A stretch of DNA of 64,000 bases from Phyllobates terribilis (lineage: Eukaryota): assembly GCF_046119375.1 (NCBI RefSeq), contig NW_027362773.1, forward strand, positions 162,254,001-162,318,000. Reading direction: 5' to 3'. Below, piece after piece: positions 28,001 to 45,745 of the stretch. The notes below the pieces were generated by a model. That model was not told where the DNA came from. It did no database searches and saw only the letters and a program-made list of their open reading frames with translations. Position 1 is the first letter of the stretch. Each line of letters begins with the position of its first letter. The position numbers were made by a program, and so were the translations under genes.

Positions 28001-31000
28001 CGGCGGCACCCCTCGCACGCAGCGGGCACACGAAATGGAAAATGCTGAGGTCACAAGGCGGCGCCCCTCGCACGCAGCGGGCACACGAAATGGAAAATGC
28101 TGAGGTCACGCGGCGGCACCCCTCGCACGCAGCGGGCACACGAAATGGAAAATGCTGAGGTCACGCGGCGGCGCCCCTCGCATGCACACGAAATGGAAAA
28201 GAAGCTGCAGAGCGAGAGGAACAACACAAAGCAGGAGGATGTCACAATGTCATTCATAGAGACTGAGCCACACAATGATTGATAACCACATAGAAATATA
28301 TACAATAAACTCACATAGGATTAGAAGACTCAATAATAAAAGAGAAAAAATAAAGGGAAAAGTGCAAAAGTGACAAGTGCAAGAATGAAAAATAAATGAA
28401 TTAAACATTAAGACAAAGAAGACAAAGAAAATACATTTTTCGTATGAAACACAAATATATCGATACGTAGCAGAATGCACAATACAAGAGAAATATACAC
28501 AGCGAGGAACGGGAATATTATTATTATTATAAGCGGCATCAAAGGGCGCGAGAGCAGAAATACCCAAATCCCAAGTAAATGTCAGAACACAATCTACGGC
28601 TCCTCCTTATTCCTTTATTTTTTCCCCCTTTTTCTTCCTTTCTACTTTTATCCATATGTATAGAAAAATAATTGTAATTCTAAAAAAGTTACAAATATCA
28701 GGAACAAGGAGAAGGTAAGAACCATGAATATAAGAAGGAGGGTAAGGACATCGCACCAGAGCTAAAAAAACATAACACCTTAAAATAGGAGAAGACAAGA
28801 TGCTGCCGACTCCTTTATCCTATTCTCAGCCAATTTACTCACTTCATGTGCAGGTGTGAACGAGGCTGTAAATAAGGAGAGAGAGGCGAATGTGTGTGTG
28901 GGGGATGTAGCTACGCCGGGCACAGGGTGACGCCGCTCCCAACTACTGGGCACACGGTGACACCACTTCCTTATATCAGGCAAATGACAATGCCGCTCCC
29001 CGAAGACGGGCACACAGTAATGTCAATCCGCTATGCCGGGCACACGGTGACGCAGCTCCCAACCACTGGGCGACGCCACTTCCCAAAGTCGGGCACACCG
29101 CGACGCCACTTCCCAAAGTCGGGCACACCGCGACGCCACTTCCCAAAGTTGGGCACACCGCAACGCCACTTCCCAAAGTCGGGCACACGACAATGCCGCT
29201 CCTCTAAGCCTGGCACACAGTGACGCAGCTTCCTTACGTTGGGCACACGGTGACGCCGCTCCCCTACGCTAGCAAAAGGGAAAAGAAGCTGCACAGCCAA
29301 TAATAGGAAGAATGGACAATATTTGTTATTTAAAGCACCACTCCAGCAGGTTTTGTTTCAGCCCTGGAGTGGTGCTTCTAATTAGTGATGAGCGAGCATG
29401 CTCAGGTGCTCGCTGAGTATCTTTAGCGTACTCGGGTGCTATGTTTGAGTCACTCTGTGTGCATGATTTCTGCTTCTTAGGCATTCCTCACATGTATTAA
29501 AGTTGTCAAACAGTTGCAAATCATGTTCACGGAGTGACTGAAACATAACATCCGAGCACGCTGAAGATACTCGGCGAGCACATGAGCATGCTCGCTGAAA
29601 CGGTTAACAGAACATACTCGCTCATCACTACTTCTAATCCGCATGTAGTCTTATACTTACCTGCCCCCATCTTTACCTTTTATCAGCACCACTCCGGTCC
29701 CACGCCGCCATCTTGAGACTGTGACTTCTGAGTGACTGGAAGTCCGAAGTAACGGTCCAAAGAGCTCAATGTAAATCTATGAGGCCAGAACAAGGTTCCC
29801 ATAGACTTACATTGAAAAGTGACCTCCGGCTCCTCCAGCAAGTCACAAACTGACGGAGATGGACTGGAGAAGCGGTGATAGAAGGTGAAGACGGCAGCAG
29901 GTAGGAGAGACGGGGCAAGGACCTAGAACGCCGACAAACAATCATGTATAAATGACAGACGGGATGAATATAATAATCCAGAACATCAGGCAAAAATAAA
30001 GAAGATTGATAATATCCCCGTGGCTGAATGGGGTTAGACTAAAGCGCAAGCAGAAAGGATAAATAAAATCCTCCCCTGATTCTGCCCTTTATTCCTCCTC
30101 TTTATATCATCTCCTTCCTCTTTCATTTCCCTTTCTCTTCCTACTTGTAAGCGTATGTAATAAAAAGAATAGTAATTATCAGAATATGAATATTGGGAAC
30201 AAGGAATAAAAGAAAAGACAAAATTTGGTGACAGCTCCTGTACACCCGACAAGAGACTGACCGTCACCTGCAAACAGAGACCAGGTGTGTACAGCGGCTA
30301 ACAGCAGCCTCATACGTGTACACACGGGGTCAAAATTGTTGTTACCCCTCGTTTAATGAAAGAAAAACCCACAATGGTCACAGAAATAACCAGAATCTGA
30401 CAAAAGTAATAATAAATTACAAATCTATGAAGATGAACAAATGAAGGTCAGACATTGCTTCTCTGCTTCCACAGAATGTAAAAAATATTAACCTCATGAA
30501 ATCGGCCCGGACAGAAATGATGGGACCCCTGAAAATAATGTGACAAAAGGGACAAGATAAATCAAGCTGTGTCCAGTAATTATCATCACAGGGGTCTACA
30601 ATCCTGTAATCAGTCAGTGGCCTGTATATAGGACTACAGATACTCACTGTGCTGTATATAGGACTACAGATACTCACTGTGCCTGTATATAGAGCTACAG
30701 ATACTCACTGTGCCTGTATATAGAGCTACAGATACTCACTGTGCCTGTATATAGGACTATAGATACTCACTGTGCTGTATATAGGACTACAGATACTCAC
30801 TGTGCTGTATATAGGACTACAGATACTCACTGTGCCTGTATATAGAGCTACAGATACTCACTGTGCCTGTATATAGAGCTACAGATACTCACTGTGCCTG
30901 TATATAGGACTACAGATACTCACTGTGCTGTATATAGGACTACAGATACTCACTGTGCTGTATATAGAGCTACAGATACTCACTGTGCTGTATATAGGAC

Positions 31001-45745: not shown

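Follow-up and report, generated by a model that had tools for sequence, protein, structure and literature searches.

A dead Sleeping Beauty-like Tc1 transposon in an MTCH2-like intron and the probable growth of its own 31-nt TATA segment into about 380 tandem units

Mouse L1 elements, with the monomers of their 5' UTR, and SVA elements, with their VNTR, both hold a regulatory or internal unit in tandem inside the element, in a number that varies. The mouse L1 monomers are ~200 bp long, few, carried by an active family, and have been shown to promote transcription. The locus described here resembles both systems in that an internal unit of a transposon stands in tandem, but, compared with the mouse L1 monomers, its unit is only 31 bp long, its element is dead, and any promoter activity of its unit is putative. 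Satellites that arose from the untranslated or terminal parts of transposons are also well documented (PMC4079207; PMC9659126; PMC3879986). These include the transposon-derived tandem repeat TIR-220 of Tetris in Drosophila virilis (PMC4079207), ENSAT1 from the 5' UTR of Atenspm, PisTR-A from the 3' UTR of Ogre and miDNA4 in a Xenopus Tc1-mariner MITE (all three in a table in PMC9659126), and the transposon-derived repeat DTC84 in clam (PMC3879986). As in these five cases, a short non-coding piece has been tandemly amplified inside its element, and its origin can be read from one-unit copies. Unlike them, the array described here belongs to one dead autonomous-type Tc1, with a 31-bp unit repeated ~380 times at a single locus, and the amplified piece is the element's TATA segment. 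It is an ordinary kind of repeat birth whose origin is unusually well proven, and although the locus alone changes no view of the field, it offers a clean, datable example of repeat DNA born from a transposon, in which one can read the single-copy ancestor, the ancestral and derived variants, and the sequence of events, fixed by a nested insertion.

The window, by which we mean the whole 64-kb stretch of DNA that was analysed, contains the following features of this locus (host Tc1, the array-bearing element; TIR, terminal inverted repeat).

30319..30320, unstranded: TA target-site copy, left flank of the host Tc1 (sequence read directly)
30321-45221, plus strand: host Tc1, Sleeping Beauty-like, a single element (TIRs, TA flanks, colinear relatives)
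30321..30523, plus strand: left TIR of the host Tc1, 203 bp (197/203 against the reverse complement of 45019-45221)
30524..30619, plus strand: unique 5' untranslated part of the host Tc1 before the array (alignment with relatives)
30620..40884, plus strand: array part 1, ~335 units of 30/31 bp, with mixed variants GAGCT, GGACT, GGGCT and GGACTAT (TRF, unit census, variant map)
40885..42502, minus strand: nested second Tc1 of another family, dead, 1,618 bp (own TIRs, TA flanks, Pfam, frame breaks)
42503..43950, plus strand: array part 2, the remainder of the interrupted unit, 37 GGGCC units, then 9 GGGCT units (TRF, variant map, exact repeat)
43951..43980, plus strand: remainder of the host 5' untranslated part, from the last unit to the ATG (aligns with five of five relatives)
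43981..44995, plus strand: host transposase remains, at least 5 pieces in three frames (three-frame translation, Pfam, homologues)
45019..45221, minus strand: right TIR of the host Tc1 (inverted copy of the left TIR)
45222..45223, unstranded: TA target-site copy, right flank of the host Tc1 (sequence read directly)
45659..45745, minus strand: coding part of MTCH2-like exon 1, 29 codons, donor CAG/GTGAGT (ATG at 45745, last exon base 45659)

The outer boundaries are those expected of a Tc1-like element: terminal inverted repeats of 203 bp, 97% alike in inverted comparison, and a TA target-site duplication are both present. The terminal 30-mer of the TIR occurs at two sites only in the 64-kb window, both of them the TIRs, with 0 expected. 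Together with one unit, the two arms of the element come to ~1.6 kb, a normal size (cf. ~1.63 kb in L001, one of the relatives introduced below). The transposase, whose ATG at 43981 lies downstream of the array, has no intact ORF, as three-frame translation yields pieces in three frames with stops. The paired-like bipartite HTH DNA-binding domain is present (PF25787 HTH_SB, 70.4 bits, cut-off 43), the pieces also match PF01498 HTH_Tnp_Tc3_2 (38.1 bits, cut-off 31.5), and the motifs WTDET and NPIEHLW were both found. A 143-aa catalytic piece had no Pfam match at E<=0.01; it had 685 homologues, the best of which carry PF13358, with identities of up to 81% over nearly the whole piece. The second catalytic D reads N (QQNNDPKH). 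Given the broken transposase, the HTH matches and this D-to-N change, the host element is a dead Tc1-like transposon of the Sleeping Beauty kind. It is like Sleeping Beauty and the fish and frog Tc1-like elements in combining HTH_SB with HTH_Tnp_Tc3_2, in its TA target, in its long inverted ends and in its base length of ~1.6 kb. In contrast to Sleeping Beauty itself, its transposase is broken, with a catalytic D replaced, and its terminal sequence (CACACGGGG..) is that of another subfamily. An exact 22-mer of the host TIR had 0 matches in metagenome contigs and in viral contigs, and a related-locus search found no relative in genome contigs or viral contigs. As a separate observation, a catfish protein fragment (Clarias magur, P0057) matches the host transposase piece at 95% identity over 56% of its length, while frog homologues (Leptobrachium) reach 70–74%, much below the catfish fragment; such a pattern would fit a horizontal spread of the Tc1 lineage.

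Between the left arm and the transposase ATG, the satellite proper amounts to 10,265 + 1,448 bp = 11.7 kb, or ~380 units. TRF reports a period of 31 throughout, first with 336.7 copies at 95% and then with 47.0 copies at 99%, and a 24-nt unit pattern has 379 matches where 0 are expected. The units are either 31 bp long (223 units, with a GCC start) or 30 bp long (140 units, with a GC start). All exact TGTATATAG cores lie within 30620-43950, except for one at 263, and no array of the TATA-segment unit was found at any other locus within the 64-kb window. At its left junction the array leaves unique element sequence directly (..cagtcagtgg followed by cctgtatatagg..), and at its right junction it re-enters it (..gatactcaatgtgctgt followed by ttggtgac..) shortly before the ATG at 43981. 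Part 1 is made up of 23 distinct unit types, its longest exact internal repeat is 277 bp, and its variants are clustered (168 runs versus 205 +/- 7.5 in shuffles, z about -5), as expected from local duplication with unequal exchange. The dominant variant is GAGCT, a derived form present in 180 units, and GGGCT units persist at the array's right edge. Part 2 holds the 37 units of the GGGCC variant, which are 99–100% identical and form an uninterrupted run of 38 identical periods (1,184 bp), in which 1,153 bp repeat exactly at offset 31. Between 30620 and 43950, the 11.7 kb of array contain 2 CpG (observed/expected 0.004), so that a methylation assay over the array has almost nothing to read; the observed/expected ratio in the flank at 45222-46300 is 0.79.

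The ancestral state of the unit is visible in five relatives of the element, L001–L005, which were found among JGI metagenome contigs with the 143-aa piece (80–93% amino-acid identity) and which, at 74–89% identity, serve as outgroups from metagenome contigs rather than as a family consensus of the Phyllobates terribilis genome. The left arm aligns at 74–81% identity with L001 and L003–L005, as far as the point where their one homologue of the unit begins (in L002 only short pieces of it align, including the last ~40 nt), and the ATG-side arm aligns at 79–89% with all five. Both arms are colinear with the relatives, with nothing doubled or missing. In every relative the gap between the two arms is 30–33 nt, i.e. 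one homologue of the unit, and it starts 65 nt before the ATG. This homologue matches the unit at 28 of 32 positions (88%) in L001, in line with the identity of the arms to that relative (81–89%), and at 22–23 of 32 in the other four. A TATA-like motif sits at the same place in all of them, reading TATATATAG, TATTTAAAG, TAATTAAAG or TATTTAAAT where the present element has the core given above. That one homologue occupies the same position in all five relatives shows that the unit is the host element's own 5' untranslated segment and not a foreign satellite. An independent foreign satellite inserted into the element was considered and ruled out, since a single homologue lies between colinear arms in five of five relatives. 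Of the variants in the array, GGGCT is the ancestral one, because it is the best or equal-best match to the relatives.

The two parts of the array are separated by a second Tc1, which has its own TIRs of ~260 bp (96.6% alike) and TA flanks at 40883-4 and 42503-4. Its ORF pieces score above the Pfam cut-off for HTH_Tnp_Tc3_2 and just under it for HTH_SB (37.3 bits, cut-off 43) and DDE_3 (27.1 bits, cut-off 28.6), and their translation shows frame breaks. When the nested Tc1 and one TA are taken out, a perfect unit is restored, which shows that it inserted in the TATA of one unit. The placement of GGGCC relative to this insertion orders the later events: all units of this variant lie on the right-hand side of the nested Tc1, and the first of them is the one that was split by the insertion. 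That the insertion should have landed exactly at the GGGCC boundary by chance is unlikely, and a simpler explanation is that the GGGCC block expanded after the nested insertion, which then blocked its spread leftwards, so that expansion continued in place after the second Tc1 had arrived.

These results agree in large part with the preliminary description of this DNA, which had proposed that matching TIRs with TA flanks bracket the whole block, that a unit of 30/31 bp is present in ~380 copies between the left side of the element and a point just upstream of the ATG at 43981, and that this unit is the element's own TATA-containing upstream segment. The ends, the period, the copy count and both junctions were all recovered as described, and the number of units per element in the family, which that description had named as a check on the origin, was one in each of L001–L005. 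Two of its statements need amendment. Its 13-kb satellite block does contain the array, but the block is not all satellite, as the nested Tc1 at 40885-42502 had been overlooked and the satellite comes to 11.7 kb. Its amplification in situ holds for the last 37 units at least, given where GGGCC is found; that the first duplication also took place at this locus is something we infer.

We consider it very likely that a single Tc1 inserted here and died, that its own 31-nt TATA segment was tandemly duplicated, and that the array grew in local waves to ~380 units, most likely without function. The sequence of steps would run as follows. First, intron 1 of the MTCH2-like gene received, at a TA, a Sleeping Beauty-like Tc1 in antisense orientation to the gene, and this element died. 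Second, a 31-nt piece of its 5' untranslated part, with the TATA-like motif ~60 nt before the ATG, would have been duplicated in tandem. Third, replication slippage and unequal sister-chromatid exchange could have raised this to ~380 units (11.7 kb), with growth, fourth, in local waves during which derived variants would have replaced the ancestral GGGCT. Fifth, one unit took up the second Tc1 in its TATA, and finally the 37-unit block of the new variant GGGCC expanded on one side of it only. A pre-existing direct repeat around the single-copy unit was considered as a seed for slippage and is suggestive at most. The best self-match across the single-copy unit falls at offset 31 in all five relatives (10–11 of 17 positions matching), a value reached in 7–27% of shuffles and so not beyond chance, the five relatives not being independent. 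The unit as single-stranded DNA has a weak hairpin propensity (z = -2.2; 7 of 200 shuffles fold as well).

An unlikely alternative is that a short array was already present in the progenitor when it inserted, the element being one of a Tc1 subfamily whose internal array varies in size and merely grew further here. Such a history would fit the presence in the window of two arrays of one 71-bp unit, one of which runs into a Tc1 transposase frame, but all five relatives have one unit only and at least 37 of the units arose after the nested insertion. In addition, a Tc1 of many kilobases is expected to transpose poorly, as is established for Sleeping Beauty.

It is also improbable that the array, though real, has been much inflated in its assembled length, or misjoined. 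The 38 identical periods in a row are hard to size, and these 1,184 bp are the part most open to mis-sizing. In contrast, part 1 (10.3 kb) is heterogeneous, with ordered patches of variants and no exact internal repeat longer than 277 bp, and the nested Tc1 within the array is unique, with clean TA duplications, and its removal together with one TA restores a perfect unit. The 23 distinct unit types, the short longest repeat and the nested Tc1 together argue that the array is not a simple assembly loop.

The host element lies close to the start of a gene that we take to be MTCH2 from the human N-terminus, and on its far side stands a putative first coding exon, near 49.5 kb on the plus strand, of what we presume, again from the human protein, to be AGBL2. 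The exons of the MTCH2-like gene were located singly by short motifs: exon 2 begins near 18379, so that intron 1 is about 27.3 kb long, of which the host element makes up 54.6% and all tandem arrays together 64%. The element ends 438 bp from exon 1. The preliminary description had put this distance at ~440 bp from the exon 1 donor and the element's share at more than half of the intron, both of which the measurements support, and its remark that the TATA motifs point towards MTCH2 exon 1 (antisense) and AGBL2 is correct as geometry. Two effects of the array are sure, namely that the intron is longer by 13.3 kb (nested Tc1 included) and that a CpG-free block now lies 438 bp from exon 1; the intron of a conserved gene has grown by half from one 31-nt segment. 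The interval between MTCH2 exon 1 and AGBL2 is likely a shared promoter region.

Given this position, the array might be thought to act as a multiplied core promoter or a TBP sink, and so to drive or interfere with transcription that runs antisense to MTCH2 exon 1 and in the direction of AGBL2, but we regard such a role as very unlikely. Its appeal lies in the unit, which contains the TATA-like motif that the family conserves at one distance from the ATG and is close in length to the distance from a TATA to a transcription start, and in the array, all 379 units of which point at exon 1 from 438 bp away and which, having 2 CpG in 11.7 kb, would escape any direct action of CpG methylation. Moreover, the 5' ends of Tc1/mariner elements are known weak promoters (PMC6446368), and in Sleeping Beauty the predicted TATA boxes lie within the segment to which the promoter has been assigned (PMC6446368, citing Walisko 2008). 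On its own, however, a TATA that lacks enhancers is weak, and the host gene, conserved and of housekeeping type, evidently tolerates the array. The genome is also full of unrelated arrays of the same size class, so that selection is not needed as an explanation. Most likely, then, the array is a functionless by-product of a genome that readily makes minisatellites.

Finally, that the array is an unrelated satellite caught between two independent insertions of one family is hardly credible: the TA flanks are admittedly uninformative here, every Tc1 insertion having a TA, but the alignment with the five relatives contradicts such a history, as, on the map of the relatives, the end of the left arm and the beginning of the right arm are separated by precisely one unit, without overlap or gap, and the unit itself is the piece missing between them.

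The reading we favour, in situ growth from one segment of a dead Tc1, sets the locus within a wider pattern. Minisatellites of period 23–71 cover 30.9 of the 64 kb (48%) of the window in about 20 separate arrays of unrelated sequence, whereas the contigs of the relatives that were checked (L002, L004 and L005) contain almost none, which indicates that array-making is a trait of this genome and not of the Tc1 family. The poison-frog genome paper leaves tandem repeats unmentioned (PMC11152451), so the genome-wide pattern may be under-described, a claim that is separate from that of the array at this locus. Why one genome should hold so many arrays of one size class is the wider question, and a more interesting one than the locus itself. 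One speculative answer, which we think doubtful as a whole, is that a lineage-specific mutational process turns short segments (about 25–70 nt, often about 31–33 nt inside Tc1) into kilobase arrays and so adds materially to intron and genome growth, that Tc1 elements might be favoured seeds because double-strand-gap repair after excision copies them back with template slippage, and that the present array, as a multiplied CpG-free TATA core, might be transcribed towards the MTCH2/AGBL2 promoter region.

Several other repeats in the window were recorded alongside the array. A further 31-bp array (6.9 copies, 100% identical, 45416-45628) starts inside intron 1, 30 nt from the exon-1 donor; it shares its period with the Tc1 unit, but the two units are unrelated. 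A GC-rich 40-bp minisatellite of 2.2 kb (46304-48526) takes up much of the interval that separates MTCH2 exon 1 on the minus strand from the putative AGBL2 exon on the plus strand. The two arrays with a common 71-bp unit are located at 12433-13147 and 56854-58279, and the latter continues into a Tc1 transposase frame, at its C-terminal end (58108-58386, minus strand). Downstream of the putative AGBL2 exon, the intervals 52000-55200, 55441-56268, 58413-59159 and 60637-61705 jointly contain a retroelement, recognisable by the reverse-transcriptase motif YLDD, and the remains of three more Tc1-type transposases, which belong to other families.
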